From NCBI GenBank assembly GCA_038496445.1, contig JALMLS010000330.1:90274-154273 (forward strand): 64,000 bases of DNA, read 5' to 3'. Shown here one piece after another: positions 7,071 to 23,464 of the stretch. A program made the translations under genes and the position numbers. The DNA is from Trichosphaerium sp. ATCC 40318. Lineage: Eukaryota; Protista; Tubulinea. The notes beneath the pieces are model-generated. The model worked only from the letters and a program-made list of their open reading frames with translations. It was not told where the DNA came from and did no database searches. Positions within the stretch are counted from its first letter, which is position 1, and each line of letters starts with the position of its first letter.

Positions 7071-8627
7071 ATGGACTGCTTGGGCACTTCAATTGAGCAG
7101 GCACTCATATACTATTGTGAGAACCACAAAGATGAATACAGTAGAATTACTGCAGAACAACGCAAACCATTCCTAAAACAGCTTGAAAGTATCTTAAACA
7201 ATGCAAACAAGAGACTGATGTTACAACTTGACCAATATCTACTCCAAAACACTTGTACGACTAAACAGCGAGCAGAAAAGGTTGCCAAGGATATACATTC
7301 ACAACGTCATCGTGATACAAACACTGAAGAGCTAGCATTGCCTCAACATAAGCTAACAAGACAGTGCGCTATTCCTTATTGTTTATATCACTAACAGCTG
7401 CAAAAAAGTAGAACACAGACGACTATACAACACTCCACCATTCTCGATTTCCCCCCAGAGGTTATTTCAACTATCCTACATCAGGTAGATGCAAAATCAA
7501 GATTTATTGTTGTGCAAACTTGTCATATGATGGCTGATATTATTCATCATGTTGTTGGTTATGAAAAGATATTCATATATGACATTCCAGATATTCTAAA
7601 GGTTAGACAATACCAAGGTGTTATGAACAACACAATCGTTGTTTTGAATGTTGAAAACAATACTTTATTCTCATTGCTGTCAGGGTGTAAAAACGTTTCT
7701 GCTGAGTTCACAAGAAGTTCTGTAGCATTAATTGAGAAGAGTAGTGTTATAAATGACACTGACCTCAAAGCACTTGCAGGAGTTCATTACATTTATCTAA
7801 ATCGTTGTAAGCATATTACAGATGAAGGTATACGAGCATTGAGCGGTGTACATACCATAGTTCTTTCTATGACGTCAGTCACAGATGAAGGTATTAAAGC
7901 ACTTAAAGGTGTTCATAATATTTGCCTTTGTAGTTGTAAAAACGTGACGGATGAAGGCATCAAATCGCTTGCAGGAGTGCACACGATTGATGTAATGTTA
8001 TGTCCAAATGTGACGGATGAAGGCATCAAATGCTTAGCTGGTGTTCACCACATTGATCTTTCACGTACCTCAGTGACAGATAGGGGTGTAAAGTTCCTAG
8101 CTGGAGTTCACACAATCTACCTTTCTCGTACTTCAGTAACTGATGAGGGAATCAAATCACTCAAAGGAGTACACTCCATCTATCTTCAAGATGTACCTGT
8201 TTCAGATGAGGGTGTTAAAGCACTTGCAGGCGTTCATACTATTCATCTTGGAGATACATCAGTGACAGATGAAGGTATAAAATCACTCAAAGGAGTTTAT
8301 GCTATTGACCTTTCTCGCACATCAGTGACTGATGAAGGTGTCAAAGCATTGAAAGGAGTTCATGCAATTAATCTTGATGGCACATCAGTTACAGACGAAG
8401 GCATAAAAGCTCTAATAGGAGTCCATACTATTGGACTTCTAAATTGTGATCAAGTGACAAATGAAGGTATTAAAGTACTTGCAAGTGTACCAAGCCTGCA
8501 TGCTATTGAAAAGCCTTGGAGCTATAAACGTGACCCTGGACGCCCTAAGCATATTCAAATAGTTGTCTATCATCATTTGTTTATACAACGTGCTTTGAAA
8601 CTGTATTATAAAGGTCTGCCCTGTTAG
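7071..8627 (+). CDS. Helical N-terminal domain + F-box + LRR protein
   Basis: One intron (about 7364-7411, CTAAC branch) links the 7071 ORF to F-box ILDFPPEVISTILHQVDAKSRFIVVQTCHMM and about 12 repeats of LAGVHTIDLSRTSVTDEGIKA type. Confidence 0.85.
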
Positions 8628-13297: not shown

Positions 13298-14104
13298 CTA
13301 ACAATAGTATGTAGCTCCTAACGCCTTCAAACATTCATCTGTTACATGTGTAAATGGTACATCAATAGTATGCACGCCTGCCAACGCCTTGATACCCTCA
13401 TCTGTAATCAATAAACAAGCACCTAGCCTAATAGTGTATACACCTGCCAAAGCCTGTATACCTTCATCTGATACCTTTGTACTTGTTAAATCTATAGTAT
13501 GTACACCTGCCAACTCTTTGATTCCCTCGTCTGTTATTGATTCACAACCACTTAACGAGATAGTGTGTACACCTGCCAATACCTTCAACCCCTTGTCTGT
13601 GACATTTGTAAATGATAAATCAATCTTGTATACACCTGCTAACGCCTTGATACCATCATCTGTAATCAATTCACAATTACTTAACCTAATGGTGTGTACA
13701 CCTGCTAAAGCTTTGATTCCTTCATCAGTCACCATTGTAAATGATAAATCAATCTCATGTACACCTGCTAACGCCTTGACGCCATTGTCTGTTACCTTTG
13801 TAAATGGTAGCATAATAGTATGTACACCTGCTAATGCTTTGATTCCTTCACAAGTAAAATCAAAATCAAAAGAAATAATTGTATTGTGGAGTAATGGGCT
13901 GCCAGAAAGGATCTTAATGCCATCTTCACTAGTTATTTTAATATAATTGTATCCAATGTGGTCATGAACAATAGATCGCAAAAAGCGGCATGTTTGGGCT
14001 GATTGGAGAGTATAATTCCCTTGTTTGAGAATATGCACTATAACTTCAATTGGTAGCGCAATAAGGTCAAATATGTATTCGTTTGTATTTTCGTTTTGTT
14101 CCAT
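13298..14104 (-). CDS. F-box + LRR protein (intronless)
   Basis: LIALPIEVIVHILKQGNYTLQSAQTCRFLR, then about 8 LAGVHTIxL...TDEGIKA repeats. Confidence 0.88.
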   Translation of the reverse strand: MEQNENTNEYIFDLIALPIEVIVHILKQGNYTLQSAQTCRFLRSIVHDHIGYNYIKITSEDGIKILSGSPLLHNTIISFDFDFTCEGIKALAGVHTIMLPFTKVTDNGVKALAGVHEIDLSFTMVTDEGIKALAGVHTIRLSNCELITDDGIKALAGVYKIDLSFTNVTDKGLKVLAGVHTISLSGCESITDEGIKELAGVHTIDLTSTKVSDEGIQALAGVYTIRLGACLLITDEGIKALAGVHTIDVPFTHVTDECLKALGATYYC

Positions 14105-14505
14105 TTACAAAGCACTATTAATCAAAACACTGAATCCTCTCGTACAAATAGACACCGAAGTTTCTACTTTATTTATTCGCGGTAGGAAAGATCACGTGAC
14201 TTTTAAAACCGCTTTATTGTAGTTAATGCGTTGTGTAACCTAGCCATGCTTGAAAGGCGCTGAAAGCTCACGTATTTACAAGGTTAAGTACGTTTTCTCG
14301 GACTTTTCCCGACTGATCACGTGCCTTTTAATAATATTCACAGCGTTTCCCCAAGGTCAGAAACAGGAAAAAGTACAACGGTTTAGTTAGTAAGTGATTT
14401 AATTCAAATGGTCAGTGGAACAAAAACAACGAGAGATTCATGTTTGATGTTTTATAAACAGTTTTATGACAGAAAACACGTTAATTGGTAAACAAGATTG
14501 CGATC

Positions 14506-14897
14506 TTAGCAGCTTCCACAAGCAGCTTCGCTCCAGCAACACCATTTGTCACTTCTGATGCGAAAGCATAATGGAGATCCAGGGTAGCAGTATGCAGTTG
14601 AACCTATCGTATGTAAGTATTTAAGAATTACCAACCTTTGATTTTTCACGTACATTGACCATTCTTTTCACGACCACGTTTACGCCATCCTGGAGGGCAC
14701 CATCCATTTGTATCACATGTTTCACCACACAACAGTGGTCCTTGCTATACAAACGAAAGTTAGAAAAGGAAATGTAAAAGGAGATGTTGACTTACTTCAG
14801 TTGCTCGTTTAGCTCTTTCACTGAGCTCATTAGATTGGACCGCCAAGGCGAAAGTTAAAGCCGCAAGTACAAAGACAATAAGAGTAGTAGTTTTCAT
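14506..14897 (-). CDS. Secreted Cys-rich prepropeptide, copy A (3 exons)
   Basis: MKTTTLIVFVLAALTFALAVQSNELSERAKR-ATE|QGPLLCGETCDTNGWCPPGWRKRGREKNGQ|CSTAYCYPGSPLCFRIRSDKWCCWSEAACGSC*; two GT-AG introns. Confidence 0.85.
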
Positions 14898-15247
14898 CGG
14901 GGGTTATGTTCAATTCGTGAGGTGTTGTTATGGTTTGAATTTTATGGCTGGAAGGTCAAGATGATTTAAGTCTCACTTCATGTGCAGTTATGGTAACTTC
15001 TTTATCTTATCGGAACTTTGCAATTTTTAGATCACCATACTTTTAGCCCCAAATAGAACAGCGGTAATGATAATAAGAAACCATAGAAAACAAGCATTGG
15101 ATTTAGCGAAAAAGAAATGTGGTAAACACTTTATGATACTTTTGTTCAGTGAATATGAAGACTTAAATCGATGTCTAAGTACATTCAAACAAAACCAAAT
15201 TACAAAACCTCAACCAACAACAAAGCTCATCTTCTAACAAACAACAA

Positions 15248-15657
15248 ATGAACACAACAATATTATTTGTATTGGTGACTTTGGCATTGATACCAATTGC
15301 CTTGACGACCCAATCTAAAGACTCTGAAGAAATGCCAGACATGCATGAAAAGAGATCAACTGAGGTATGTCGACACTTGGTACTTTTACATTGTATTGTT
15401 AATTAACACCTCATCTAGCAAGGACCACTGTTGTGTGGCGAAACATGTGATACAAATGGATGGTGCCCTCCTGGATGGCGTAAACGTGGTCGTGAAAAGA
15501 ATGGTCAATGTATGTGAAAAATCAAAGGTTGGTAATTCTTAAATACTTACATACGATAGGTTCAACTGCATACTGCTACCCTGGATCTCCATTGTGCTTT
15601 CGCATCAGAAGTGATAAATGGTGTTGCTGGAGCGAAGCTGCTTGTGGAAGCTGCTAA
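15248..15657 (+). CDS. Secreted Cys-rich prepropeptide, copy B (3 exons)
   Basis: MNTTILFVLVTLALIPIALTTQSKDSEEMPDMHEKR-STE, then the same 10-Cys mature sequence and the same intron positions. Confidence 0.85.
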
Positions 15658-16391
15658 GATCCTGCACTCCAATATGAATGTAAAACTAAATAAAGTACCC
15701 AAGTTTTACTATTATTCGTTTTCATAGTTAGGCTGCATTGTCAGCTCCAAGTTCAACAAGAAACACATGTTGTGAGTCAATTGAATACACAGTGTATGTG
15801 GCAACGTGTGTGCCTGTAAAAACCAATGAGCATAGGCACTACATTATTTTAGCAGAAACTGGTTTATTAAACGTGAAACACACTTGTTCAATCGCTAAAA
15901 TAATGTTCAACGTAGCGCTAAAATATAGCAATGCAGACTTGCATTCACTTTTCAAGCAAGTGATACCGCATACAGGCAGGGCATGGCATCCAAATGTTAC
16001 AGTTACTACAACATATGGTGTTAGAGCGAATGGTATAGCCATGTTTAATTAGCAAAACAGCACTAAACCAGGATAGAACCAAAGGCAATGTAAACCTTTT
16101 TGACTTTGTCCTTATGCCATTGAGTACAATCAAATTAGCTCAGTGAGTGAACTATGAGCATAAGAAGTAACTCAACTATTTTTTGCTGGCAAGTATTGAG
16201 CCGACCCATTTTTTTGTAGTGATTGCTGGAGAATGTAATAGTTCATTGGCCGAAGAATTGTGACTGAAATTTATGTTTCATTTTGATACAACGAGCAGTT
16301 TAGTTAGTAAACTGTAGTCTGATTCTACTTGTTGGCACTTTTATTGATTTCTTACAATGATATATGGCACAACAAGTATGGCTTTGCAATC

Positions 16392-16799
16392 TTAGCAACT
16401 TCCACAAGCAGCTTCACTCCAGCAACACCATTTGTCACTTCTGATGCGAAAGCATAATGGAGATCCAGGGTAGCAGTATGCAGTTGAACCTAATAAAGGT
16501 AAGTATTAAAGAATTACCATCCTTGATTTTCACGTACATTGACCATTCTTTTCTCGACCACGTTTACGCCATCCAGGAGGACACCATCCATTTGTATCAC
16601 ATGTTTCACCACACAACAGTGGTCCTTGCTAAATTGCATGTTAATTAACAATACAATGTAAAAGTACCAAGTGTCGACATACCTCAGTTGATCTCTTTTC
16701 ATGCATGTCTGGCATTTCTTCAGAGTCTTTAGATTGGGTCGTCAAGGCAATTGGTATCAATGCCAAAGTCACCAATACAAATAATATTGTTGTGTTCAT
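16392..16799 (-). CDS. Secreted Cys-rich prepropeptide, copy C (3 exons)
   Basis: Leader identical to copy B; mature region differs only by synonymous changes. Confidence 0.85.
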
Positions 16800-17150
16800 T
16801 TGTTGTTTGTTAGAAGATGAGCTTTGTTGTTGGTTGAGGTTTTGTAATTTGGTTTTGTTTGAATGTACTTAGACATCGATTTAAGTCTTCATATTCACTG
16901 AACAAAAGTATCATAAAATGTTTACCACATTTCTTTTTCGCTAAATCCAACGCTTGTAATCCATGATTGTTAGTCATCAATATACTGACACAAATAATGC
17001 TATTCTATCTGGGTTTTGCAAAGTAGACTTACGATATTGTGAAACAAATATAATTTACCGTAACATTTCACGTGAATGGAGACTTAAACCATAATGACCT
17101 TCAAGTCATAAATACAAACCATAACAAGAACAACTACACCTTATAGAACA

Positions 17151-17544
17151 ATGCAAACAACAACACTTTTCGCTTTTGTACTCATGGCATTGACTGTTGC
17201 CTTGGCGGTCCAATCTAATGAGCTCAGTGAAAGAGCTAAACGAGCAACTGAAGTAAGTAAAGATCTCATTACTTTTCCATCGCATTCTAATATCGATTTA
17301 GCAAGGACCACTGTTGTGTGGTGAAACATGTGATACAAATGGATGGTGTCCTCCAGGATGGCGTAAACGAGGTCGAGAAAAGAACGGTCAATGTACGTGA
17401 AGATCAAAAGAAGGGTAACAGACTTCTTTGTACTTACCTTTATTAGGTTCAACTGCATACTGCTACCCTGGATCTCCATTATGCTTTCGCATAAGAAGTG
17501 ACAAATGGTGTTGCTGGAGCGAAGCTGCATGTGGAAGCTGTTAG
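17151..17544 (+). CDS. Secreted Cys-rich prepropeptide, copy D (3 exons)
   Basis: MQTTTLFAFVLMALTVALAVQSNELSERAKR-ATE, then the same mature sequence; TAG stop. Confidence 0.85.
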
Positions 17545-17857
17545 TCACTAACTGCTTTACTGTGCTTTAATCAAATAAAGACAACTTAGTTAAAGTACAC
17601 AATGGCGTTTATTTGTTAAACCCTTTCTTTTGCTCGTATCTGTTTAAGTAGCATTGATACACTCTTGCGATTTTCCTTTTTACTCTTCTGAGCTTGTTTC
17701 GGATCCATCGAACTTATCCGTGACTCGCATGATCGTTCAGTATATTACAATCACAATTGTACTATATGCGTGGCAGTACGCAAGAACCCAAGCTGAGATT
17801 ATCATCATTTGATCTTTTTTTTCTTTTGTTCAAAAAGACTCTCTGGTCTTGTTCTCT

Positions 17858-19692
17858 ATACTAGCAAAGTTCTTGTGCTATTTACCAATAACCTGTGTTT
17901 TTTCCATCAGTAACATATTATAAATAAGGGAAAAAAAAGAAACAAGGGAGTTGAGTTATCGAAGGAAGTTGATTACTTCTTTTTTTTTTGTTGACTTTTT
18001 TTTATGCGAACCGTTGCTTTGATCTCTTCTCTCTAACACTTGTCACATTACTAAATCTGCTCCATTCCCAGTTGATTTTTGGATGTAATTTTGATAATAT
18101 CTGCGGAAATAGGTTTATAGCAATAAAAGAACCTCCAGTATTCCTTAATGATTTTGTACAAACACGATACCTAAATAACCTATTAATAACGAATAACAAA
18201 TCATATTTTGGCCAATAAGTAAACATAATCACAAGTGTGGCAACAGCGGTTTGAAAAGTAAGAAAAAGTGCCAAACACACTAAAGGCGGAAAAAAACAAG
18301 AAAAACTTAAAACAGGTTTTTTTTGAAGTGTTTTTGGGTTTTGTGATTTGTATTTTATCTTATGATGTTGTCGTACCAAGATTCCGGTTTCTCAATATTT
18401 TGCTGAACTTCTAATCTCTTTAAAAAGTTCATAACATTTTCTTGTTTATGCCAAAAACCAGCAGCTTGTCTAAAACCTGAGCGGTTTAAAAACTGTTTAT
18501 GGTCCCAATTATAGTCTTTGTAGATAGACTCTAGGCAATCTATAAGTCTTCCTTTATATCTAAATAATATCAGAACAAGAAATAAGGGTATCAAAATCAA
18601 AGAATAGCGAAGCTCACGAACCGACAAGTTGACATATTGTAAAAAAAATTTCTTCAAAGTACCTATTTGCGAGTATTCCTGAGCCCTTTTCTTGTACTAT
18701 GGCTTTACTTTGAACACTGTACCAACTATCCATTGTCTTTAGTTTAAGAGTACGGCCAATATCATCGAATTTTTCTCTTTGGTTATCCAAACAATCCCAG
18801 TGGTTATGAGGAACATTTCTTTTCAAAAAAGTGAGAAAAAAAGAACGAAAAAAGTATTTTTTGATTGCTCGTGACAAGTTGTTTCATGAAAGTAAATAAT
18901 AAACAGGTAATGATAGATAAAGTATTGTGGTAGTAATTATGAAAGTATTAATGATTTATCTGGGACGTAAAAGGAGGATTGAAACGATAAGAGATGGAAA
19001 AAAAAATTGTTCTTTTGTAAAACAACACGCACATGAACTGTTGTTTATCCCATTTTTTATCAGGATAGAGATTTTGTAGGCAGTTCACAAGTGAGCCATC
19101 ATGTCTATTTATTGTATAAGTCTAAAAAAAACTGTGACAGGCAAGTACTTTAGGAGCGTTGTTCTACATCCTGCGTCGGCCATGTCGTCAAAGGAAATCT
19201 CATACCAATCATCGAGAACAAATACACCAATTTTTTTAGCAGTTTTCTCTAATAAATCTTTATGATTGCTATCTAAGTTCCAGTAGTGATGTGGCACCCA
19301 TCTGTTAGGTGTCAGTTATATTTTTTTTGGGCAGTTCGGTTTCAAACTGTGTTTGGCACGTCATACCTGAACCTGGATGTTACCCAGTCGTATTCTCTGT
19401 ATAAATCTGCCAATGCGTGAGATAATGAAGAGTTATAGCTCGAAACTGAGTTAGAAGCGCTTCAGACGCGTAATTATGGTACAGGATACCTATTTAAGCA
19501 AACTTTACTCGCACTCAATACATCATTAACGCGAATGTCATACCAGTCATCGTAGCAATATACCATTAGTCTAGGTGAGACAATGGCATCAAATATACGT
19601 CTAACATCATTTCTCGGTTGTTTGGCTCATTAATATAAGCAAACGCTACAAATACCATATTTACCTTGTAATTTAAACTGTAAAGTTCTCAT
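17858..19692 (-). CDS. Uncharacterised Trp-repeat protein (W..N.R..FD...L....DWY repeats), multi-exon
   Basis: Four similar units: RRIFDAI..YDDWYDI, HYWNLDSNHKDLL..LDDWYEI, NHWDCLDNQREKFDDI..MDSWYSV, GFWHKQENVMNFL..PESWY. Gene ends are approximate. Confidence 0.65.
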
Positions 19693-22074: not shown

Positions 22075-22342
22075 TTTAGTACAACCAATCTGGTTTTGAG
22101 TTGACTTTTGGCATTTTAGCCGAAATTCGAGTGAACTTTGCAAAACGTTTTATCTTGTTCTTACCAGTGTCACGTGGCTTTTGTTATTGCGTCTTTTACG
22201 AAGGCCATGTGGTAGTCCACAAGCCAAACACTAAAGAATGTGTAGTGTTCAATGAACGTCAAACGGTTGAAAACGTGAAACATGGTTTTTGGCGATATAA
22301 CGTATTAAAGAACGTCGTGCTTGATATTAATGCTTGTTGGCA

Positions 22343-23464
22343 ATGTCTAAAGACAATTGGCGGGTAGTTCACTTTAAATGGTATAAGAATGCCAAAGACA
22401 TCACCGAAGTGCGTCTGTGCGGCTCTTGGGATAACTGGAAAGTAAATCAGCTGATAATGACAAAAGTTGTAAAATATTCAAAATCTGGTGATCTAGTCTC
22501 TTGTGTGTTTGGAGCAGGTTTAAACTTAGCACATGGCACGTACGAATACAAATTTGTTGTAGATGGCGTATGGCAGCATGATGACACCGCACCCACGCGG
22601 GTCGACGCCTCAGGTAACATAAACAACGTAATAACGATCCTAAAAGACTTTCAACATAAATATTATTTAAACAATCCTAAAACAACTCAAAATGATCCTT
22701 GTCGCACTTGTACAGATACAATAGGAACAATGGACGTAGTTATAAACTATTTAAAAGACGAGAATAAGTATGCCATTGAAGGCGCGATACCGCCTCTATT
22801 AAACCTACCACTTGAACTACAACATATGATTATAGACACTTCCAAAGAAGTTTATGTCAAATGGCCTGTACTGTGCTATGGTACAGCAGTAACTTCTCGA
22901 TTCAATAATAAACTTGAACGACATGGCACATGGAAAACAAGCGCACATGTTTGGTTTTATGAAGATGGAAAGGCGTGCAGAAAACATCAAATTTTCAAAA
23001 ATGGAGTTATTTTTTCATCATGCGATTATAACCTTGGTATGAGACATGGCGCTTATCGAAGATGGTACAAGTATACTCCTAAAATACTAGTATCTAATTG
23101 TTGCTATAGGTATGATAATGGGCAGCCTTGGCAGCAGTTGGAGTATAAAAATGGTAAAAAACATGGAAAGTCACAACATTGGTACAAAAATGGACAAATG
23201 ATGAAATTGAGGTTTTACAATAACGGTAAAATCATTGATAATACTTTATATTGGTATACTACTGGTGTGCTTAAAAGCTCAAGATGGTATATGAACGGGA
23301 AACAGCATGGAGAGGAGAAAAAGTGGTACACTAATGGATCTCTTGCTTTTTTAGCTTTGTATCATCATGGAACGGTTACTGCTACTCCACAGTGTTGGAC
23401 ACGTGCTGGAAGACCTACAGCACGAGTTTTCCTTGTACGTAGGCGTATAAGGAGGAGAAGATGA
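22343..23464 (+). CDS. CBM48 (AMPK-beta-type glycogen-binding) + F-box-like + MORN2 repeat protein (intronless)
   Basis: FKW..EVRLCGSWDNWK..GTYEYKFVVDGVWQHD..DASGNINNVI; LLNLPLELQHMII..KWPVLC; HGKSQHWYKNGQ-type repeats. Confidence 0.85.
   Translation: MSKDNWRVVHFKWYKNAKDITEVRLCGSWDNWKVNQLIMTKVVKYSKSGDLVSCVFGAGLNLAHGTYEYKFVVDGVWQHDDTAPTRVDASGNINNVITILKDFQHKYYLNNPKTTQNDPCRTCTDTIGTMDVVINYLKDENKYAIEGAIPPLLNLPLELQHMIIDTSKEVYVKWPVLCYGTAVTSRFNNKLERHGTWKTSAHVWFYEDGKACRKHQIFKNGVIFSSCDYNLGMRHGAYRRWYKYTPKILVSNCCYRYDNGQPWQQLEYKNGKKHGKSQHWYKNGQMMKLRFYNNGKIIDNTLYWYTTGVLKSSRWYMNGKQHGEEKKWYTNGSLAFLALYHHGTVTATPQCWTRAGRPTARVFLVRRRIRRRR

Follow-up and report, generated by a model that had tools for sequence, protein, structure and literature searches.

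What is encoded between positions 14506 and 17544 of a 64,000-nucleotide stretch of DNA from the marine amoeba Trichosphaerium sp. ATCC 40318 (contig C149, positions 90274-154273; hereafter the window), and what might its product do? The original prediction, made from the sequence alone, had correctly assigned this DNA to a protist and had proposed four hidden, spliced genes for a secreted peptide with ten cysteines that is released from its precursor at a KR site. We firmly conclude that these genes belong to an expressed, selected and heavily amplified family for one presumably exported, disulfide-rich peptide, for which we tentatively suggest a role in defence or feeding. The assembly that holds the window comprises 70.28 Mb in 642 contigs, and the GC content of the window is 36.6%; the published draft genome of Trichosphaerium has 70.87 Mb in 710 scaffolds, with 37.7% GC (PMC10521059).

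Four spliced genes and their transcripts

Gene models were built from positions 14200-17900 of the window and the open reading frames (ORFs) therein; both halves of the peptide are present four times. Canonical GT..AG splicing yields four complete genes, separated by three spacers:

14506..14897, minus strand: g1, exons 14897-14796, 14744-14654 and 14603-14506; A-type leader (IVFVLAAL subtype), peptide begins with A
14898..15247: g1/g2 spacer, 350 bp, head-to-head, presumed two-way promoter
15248..15657, plus strand: g2, exons 15248-15364, 15419-15509 and 15560-15657; B-type leader with acidic propiece, peptide begins with S
15658..16391: g2/g3 spacer, 734 bp, tail-to-tail
16392..16799, minus strand: g3, exons 16799-16683, 16628-16538 and 16489-16392; B-type leader identical to that of g2
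16800..17150: g3/g4 spacer, 351 bp, head-to-head, presumed two-way promoter
17151..17544, plus strand: g4, exons 17151-17252, 17302-17392 and 17447-17544; A-type leader (FAFVLMAL subtype), peptide begins with A

Each gene has three exons, and all eight introns, 48-54 nt long, run from GT to AG. Intron 1 is in phase 0 and directly follows the (A/S)-T-E codons, while intron 2 is in phase 1 and interrupts the codon of the fourth cysteine. The resulting precursors have 96 (g1, g4) or 101 residues (g2, g3). Their mature part of 65 residues, with ten Cys and four Trp, is identical in all four genes save for residue 1 (A in g1 and g4, S in g2 and g3); this identity, the number of Trp and the cysteine spacing C-x3-C-x5-C-x14-C-x4-C-x6-C-x8-CC-x5-C-x2-C are all as had been predicted. 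The same applies to the two divergent types of leader: the A-type occurs in g1 and g4, as two subtypes, and the B-type in g2 and g3, where the two leaders are identical to each other.

On the nucleotide level, the 195-nt mature coding parts of g1-g4 differ pairwise at 6-13 positions, and all differences are synonymous except in codon 1. The many synonymous differences that had been claimed are modest in number within the window, where g1 and g2 have probably undergone conversion, and become striking only across the whole family. In these two partners, the 3' 246 nt including intron 2 are 98% alike although the leaders are unrelated, which points to recent gene conversion between them. Further, g2 and g3 form an inverted repeat (15065-15520 and 16527-16982) in which they are 95% alike over 456 nt, from the promoter to exon 2. 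The g2-proximal part of the g1/g2 spacer contains blocks that are conserved upstream of all B-type copies. In the g2/g3 spacer, an AATAAA-like signal follows the 3' end of each bordering gene, and its sequence and ORFs reveal no supported gene.

The splice junctions, for which the prediction had called for a check, are carried by contigs of run X1 (2015; 9 million letters), the sole public run that we found to contain part of the window and which we guess to be derived from RNA; as it is kept as contigs, expression levels cannot be read from it. One contig joint, from 15509 to 15560, removes exactly intron 2 of g2, and another leads from 15364 to the start of an exon 2, both with GT..AG borders. 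At 14797 in g1 and 16683 in g3, the last bases of exon 1, matches to the window end and the contigs proceed directly into the codons for QGPLLC; the contig covering 14797-14929 is one that continues into exon-2 codons. One further contig departs from the window at 15647 and then reads the C-terminal GQTC and stop codon of a paralogue. Intron-less joins of this kind, at both predicted junctions, are those expected from cDNA, and we consider the gene models supported and the family transcribed.

A dispersed family and the selection on its product

The cluster in the window is not self-contained, as had been assumed; the family is dispersed, and many other clusters exist in the genome. There, exon 2 matches 50 places and so does exon 3, all of which were fetched and modelled. 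The family thus comprises about 50 loci on more than 20 contigs, a far larger amplification than the gain in dosage that had been predicted. About 41 of the loci look intact, and 27 encode the exact canonical peptide (24 from the first modelling round and three modelled later). Since several contigs look redundant (C15/C584, 99.8% alike; C152/C480, 98.5%; C224/C524, 97.7%), the non-redundant number of loci is somewhat lower than 50. Searches with the leader exons match 22 and 30 places, all of them at loci of the ten-Cys family; the leaders are therefore not common to other peptides, a possibility that we rejected, and the census is near complete.

Most of the genes sit in head-to-head pairs. 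At least ten such pairs are complete, with spacers of 279-359 bp, and each combines an A-type with a B-type signal. Tail-to-tail spacers homologous to that between g2 and g3, of 734-948 bp, recur in clusters on C40, C99, C518 and C12. The leaders have also recombined, as three copies join an A-type signal to a B-type propiece. An alignment of the regions upstream of 15 B-type genes has 94 columns with a conservation of at least 90%, which fits a shared regulation; the conserved blocks probably represent a family-specific promoter element. Examples are TTAGCGAAAAAGAAATG and TTCAGTGAATA, located about 60-130 nt upstream of the ATG and followed by a C/A-rich 5' leader. In the window, the conserved blocks lie within 15065-15247 and its mirror image 16800-16982.

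Among the mature peptides, variant A is the canonical one. Variant B, with a single N-to-R change, is found in six solitary copies on C65 and C15 that are not arranged head-to-head; a seventh, on C584, is a duplicate of a C15 locus. Variant C, with about six changes and a GQTC end, occurs on C55, C99, C152 and C480. In two of the approximately 41 intact copies (C12:655717-656121, L009/L015; C12:684995-685395, L027), intron 1 lacks its first nine bases and has a GC donor; with their frame intact and their peptide canonical, these are either rare GC-AG introns or freshly disabled copies. Others have decayed, by stop codons (C601, C185), a frameshift (C480) or loss of a donor site (C36), and the copies on C32 and at C152:15037 are without exon 3. 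Conversely, C25, C3 and C131 bear relics of exon 3 only, with no exon 1 or exon 2 nearby. These relics (L046, 2497-2589, minus strand; L047, 2533-2625, minus strand; L048, 2555-2650, plus strand) are 65-71% identical, have lost some Cys, and are embedded in another repeat, about 2 kb long, whose copies on the three contigs are 90-93% alike. Carriage of the genes by a transposon was considered, but no evidence for it was found: homology between loci mostly stops about 100-150 bp past the gene pair, and the ORFs close to an exon-3 relic, judged by eye, do not resemble transposases.

Is the identity of so many peptides a matter of gene conversion alone? The 34 copies of 65 residues have 33 distinct nucleotide sequences, with 49 segregating sites, 35 of which are at third codon positions. 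Their mean pairwise divergence is 0.32 at synonymous sites (dS; maximum 0.94) and 0.013 at nonsynonymous sites (dN), and dN/dS is 0.04. This is the unbiased figure, as compared to the at least 30 synonymous changes in the 24 first-modelled copies with identical peptide, a subset picked for identity. The leaders are under weaker constraint, with a dN/dS of 0.09-0.22. Identity declines from 96-97% in the mature coding sequence to 78-84% in intron 2, 71-74% in intron 1 and about 65% in the first 150 nt after the stop codon. Gene conversion exists in the family, with intron 2 more alike between head-to-head partners than between non-partners. However, conversion would homogenise the introns as well, and these, like the flanks, have diverged far more than the mature coding part. 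This shows purifying selection on the mature peptide itself, of the strength that had been proposed, and not gene conversion alone. The heterotypic pairs also offer a clean case for distinguishing concerted evolution from purifying selection.

Predicted precursor processing and the search for relatives

How would the peptide be released? After an initial M-K/Q/N-T-T, the precursors contain a hydrophobic stretch of 15-18 residues with small residues at positions -3 and -1 (..ALA before V, ..IALT before T), signal peptide and cleavage positions being called by eye. The propiece that follows has 12 residues and a charge of about +0.7 in the A-type, and 16 residues and a charge of about -2.5 in the B-type, so that the acidic pro-region ascribed to all four genes is a property of the B-type only. 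At the junction, KR precedes (A/S)TEQGP in 40 of 40 modelled copies, whereas neighbouring leader residues vary. With the signal part judged by eye, the predicted prepropeptide layout holds. Four loci with a Peptidase_S8 match directly upstream of a P_proprotein match on the same strand are candidates for kexin/furin-type proprotein convertases (L051-L054, in the order given):

C36:153211-154893, both domains on the same strand: candidate convertase, intron-rich, subtilase and P domain matches
C188:94006-95799, both domains on the same strand: candidate convertase, intron-rich, subtilase and P domain matches
C27:38486-40347, both domains on the same strand: candidate convertase, intron-rich, subtilase and P domain matches
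C11:113930-114710, both domains on the same strand: candidate convertase, intron-rich, subtilase and P domain matches

The presence of this domain pairing in the genome makes the predicted cut after KR plausible. However, KR alone does not define the final product. The loop between Cys3 and Cys4, long, conserved and rich in Arg and Lys, contains RKR-G in all variants and also REKR-G in variants B and C; given these internal dibasic sites, the product could be nicked or two-chain rather than a 65-mer. The computed 65-mer has a mass of 7.18 kDa, an isoelectric point (pI) of 8.1, a net charge of about +2 and a grand average of hydropathy (GRAVY) of -0.65. It is rich in Cys, Gly, Pro and aromatic residues, including four Trp and two Tyr, and has two patches rich in Arg and Lys, WRKRGREK and FRIRSDKW. 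The W-C-C-W at mature residues 55-58 (15622-15633 in g2) fits W-x-x-W, the consensus for tryptophan C-mannosylation in animals.

The cysteine framework, which had gone unrecognised in the prediction, belongs to no known family in any of our searches. For two precursors, Pfam yields no family up to E 10, with one chance match at E 0.16. Against PDB sequences, the mature peptide has no significant match, the best being an MBD protein (E 0.51) and the N-domain of aerolysin (E 1.3); the latter, the aerolysin/pertussis-toxin (APT) N-domain, was rejected as a relative, its match over 34 residues being at chance level. A word-indexed search of 5.8 billion clusters with the 96-residue precursor found no relative, and neither did a search of metagenome and viral contigs with the 49-residue open frame containing exon 3. 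An exhaustive HMMER search with exon 3 against 1.84 billion representatives gave three matches, all to tandem-repeat proteins (RCC1 repeats and others), which we regard as spurious because weak stretches in tandem repeats add up. By features, the best score in the ESM Atlas was 0.84, for lantibiotic clusters, again at chance level. AlphaFold2 models were made of the exon-2 and exon-3 pieces separately, and both reach a predicted local distance difference test (pLDDT) score of 70.5; the exon-3 piece forms a hairpin (12-22) and a short helix, the exon-2 piece is mostly coil. With the exon-3 model, neither Foldseek against the PDB nor a shape search of the Atlas gave a meaningful match. In part, the lack of detectable relatives reflects sampling, because the lineage is thinly covered and the libraries apparently do not contain the proteins of this amoeba. 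A literature search for cysteine-rich prepropeptides of amoebozoans or heteroloboseans found none, and the words 'cysteine', 'antimicrobial' and 'secreted' do not occur in the Trichosphaerium genome paper (PMC10521059).

The general kind, a secreted cysteine-rich prepropeptide, is already known; what is new is the family, which is unusual in the number of its copies, in their identity under selection and in the heterotypic pairing of leaders. In their order of signal peptide, short propiece, KR and Cys-rich core, with a leader that has its own exon and evolves faster than the core, the precursors resemble Kex2/furin-processed prepropeptides such as defensins, conotoxins and the pheromones of fungi and ciliates. 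This layout, however, is not a family, and we found no sequence relationship to any member. In families of the conotoxin type, the leader is kept while the core varies; in the present family it is the core that is frozen, combined with leaders of two swappable types.

Several known folds were considered. By eye, the exon-3 frame C-x6-C-x8-CC-x5-C-x2-C is a six-Cys C-C-CC-C-C knottin frame, and its loops of 6 and 8 are presumably those of the plant and insect knottin-type antimicrobial peptides Mj-AMP, PAFP-S and Alo-3, which we treat as a lead only. The exon-3 part is likewise small, basic and aromatic-rich, but its last two loops (5 and 2) differ, and four extra Cys are present in an N-terminal module; no knottin family is matched in Pfam up to E 10, nor any PDB chain below E 0.5. 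The hevein chitin-binding domain (PF00187), alike only in CC-x5-CG by eye, and the TIL-type ten-Cys protease inhibitors (PF01826) were rejected, as both give no Pfam match up to E 10. The cysteine-stabilised alpha-beta defensins were rejected as well: CxxxC (CGETC) is present, but CxC is absent and the C-terminus has CxxC, and neither Pfam nor the PDB gives a match.

Candidate roles of the peptide

What can be discerned about the role of a peptide encoded at some 50 loci? That 27 products are identical at a dN/dS of about 0.04 implies that it is needed in bulk and in one exact form. We favour, with a probability of roughly 0.4, a bulk-made effector in defence or feeding, that is, an antimicrobial or lytic peptide of a grazing marine amoeba. 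Speaking for it are the prepropeptide layout, the Trp- and Arg-rich patches, the grazing life and the precedent of Cys-stabilised antibacterial proteins in amoebae. Host-defence peptides typically derive from prepropeptides that are cationic, rich in Trp and Arg, stabilised by disulfides and encoded in amplified clusters. In this scenario, the N-terminal hydrophobic stretch would serve as a signal peptide, cut after ..ALA in the A-type or ..IALT in the B-type, and a Golgi convertase of the kexin/furin type would then cut after the invariant KR. The released peptide, of about 7.2 kDa and pI 8.1, with five disulfides, four Trp and its two basic patches, would bind to microbial membranes or to glycans on surfaces and thereby act outside the cell or in the phagosome; its many identical gene copies would serve dose, not diversity.

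Hardly any secreted effector peptides are known from free-living amoebae beyond saposin-like pore formers. Among amoebae, the small Cys-stabilised proteins known to act against bacteria are the amoebapores and acanthaporin (PMC5198042). Small and disulfide-stabilised as well, they have the role suggested here, the killing of ingested or nearby microbes. In contrast to them, however, the present family has a far higher copy number, and its exon pieces are predicted as mainly hairpin or coil, not as helical bundles; a relationship by sequence was rejected, as Pfam gives no SapB match and neither amoebapores nor acanthaporin are among the PDB sequence matches up to E 10.

A number of points weigh against an effector in defence or feeding. 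For a membrane-active peptide, a net charge of only about +2 and a hydrophilic character (GRAVY -0.65) are weak credentials. Families of defence peptides usually diversify, and 27 identical copies are explained equally well or better by a bulk product with a structural or stoichiometric function. Other points concern the product itself, which may differ from the 65-mer on account of its internal RKR-G and REKR-G sites, and the underlying data: signal-peptide and cleavage sites were called by eye, structure models are limited to exon pieces, and the support for transcription comes from one small run of uncertain library type.

Such a bulk product could be a building block or cross-linker of the extracellular cover, with the divergent gene pairs supplying the amount. 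The silkmoth genes for high-cysteine chorion proteins and the histone genes are also present in many copies as divergently transcribed pairs. They share with the present family the short common 5' spacer, partners of two types and concerted evolution with conversion, but here the mature product is the same for both partners, with only the leader being different, and the pairs are dispersed on more than 20 contigs instead of forming one array. The low dN/dS of about 0.03 at which the 27 copies are kept identical, the heterotypic head-to-head pairs, whose members are about 350 bp apart and have upstream blocks in common with other copies, and the composition rich in Cys, Gly, Pro and aromatic residues would all suit a coat component. 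However, an even number of Cys in a fixed pattern within a unit of 65 residues suggests a closed intramolecular fold rather than a matrix, repeats and low-complexity tracts are lacking, and the peptide is basic, unlike typical acidic mineral-associated matrix proteins; we thus consider this role possible but unlikely. Alternatively, four Trp and two Tyr on a small disulfide scaffold could form a mini-lectin that works like the chitin binders of hevein or knottin type and binds algal or bacterial polysaccharide, either in prey capture or as an antifungal or antialgal agent. By eye, the exon-3 frame fits a six-Cys knot and CC-x5-CG resembles the hevein core, and the match to aerolysin, non-significant at E 1.3, concerns its carbohydrate-binding N-domain and would point in the same direction. 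Yet the chitin-binding and lectin models of Pfam give nothing up to E 10 and Foldseek with the exon-3 model finds nothing, leaving such a lectin doubtful.

Small secreted proteins with five disulfides are often protease inhibitors or toxins. Directed against other eukaryotes, be they predators, competitors or prey, such a protein might use the exposed, conserved and basic Cys3-Cys4 loop WRKRGREK as its reactive or binding loop. We regard this as improbable, since neither Pfam nor the PDB matches any inhibitor or toxin family and since toxin families usually diversify, whereas the ten-Cys family is frozen. Ciliates have disulfide-rich prepro-pheromones, and the layout with a dibasic site would be compatible with a signalling peptide or pheromone, for which the complicated life cycle reported for Trichosphaerium (PMC10521059) could provide a use. 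As signals require only trace amounts and are usually encoded at one or few loci, often polymorphic ones, the fifty loci and 27 identical products, which argue for mass production, make such a signal very improbable. Finally, the family could be a non-functional dispersed repeat that merely looks coding, as its units of 1.2-2.5 kb are dispersed on more than 20 contigs and include several decayed copies and exon-3-only relics. This is refuted in practice by the spliced X1 contigs, the splice sites intact in nearly all copies, the dN/dS of 0.04 and the much greater divergence of introns and flanks as compared to the coding part.

A bolder version of the defence or feeding effector, which we think rather unlikely, holds that a peptide of new fold, made from about 40 copies held identical, would be the dominant exported effector, and that the two leaders, combined in each head-to-head pair, would direct it along two routes or on two schedules, such as into the phagosome and out of the cell, or that a convertase would cut it in the basic loop into a two-chain form. 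If true, such two-leader routing or two-chain cutting would represent a new organisation of a host-defence or feeding peptide system in protists. At 7.2 kDa, the peptide is small enough for direct synthesis and testing; if active, it would add a new scaffold for antimicrobial action or glycan binding, and would help to understand how prey and microbes are handled by a marine amoeba that lives by grazing.

Two long ORFs of repeated leucine-rich-type units ('AGVHTI.LS.T.VTDEGIKAL') flank the cluster at 7512-8627 (plus strand) and 13298-14104 (minus strand), the latter beginning with a stretch that is F-box-like by eye. Farther downstream, a 376-residue ORF at 22334-23464 (plus strand) has a C-terminal half made of a run of 'G.HG....WY.NG' units, MORN-like by eye, and an N-terminal part that, also by eye, resembles a carbohydrate-binding module.

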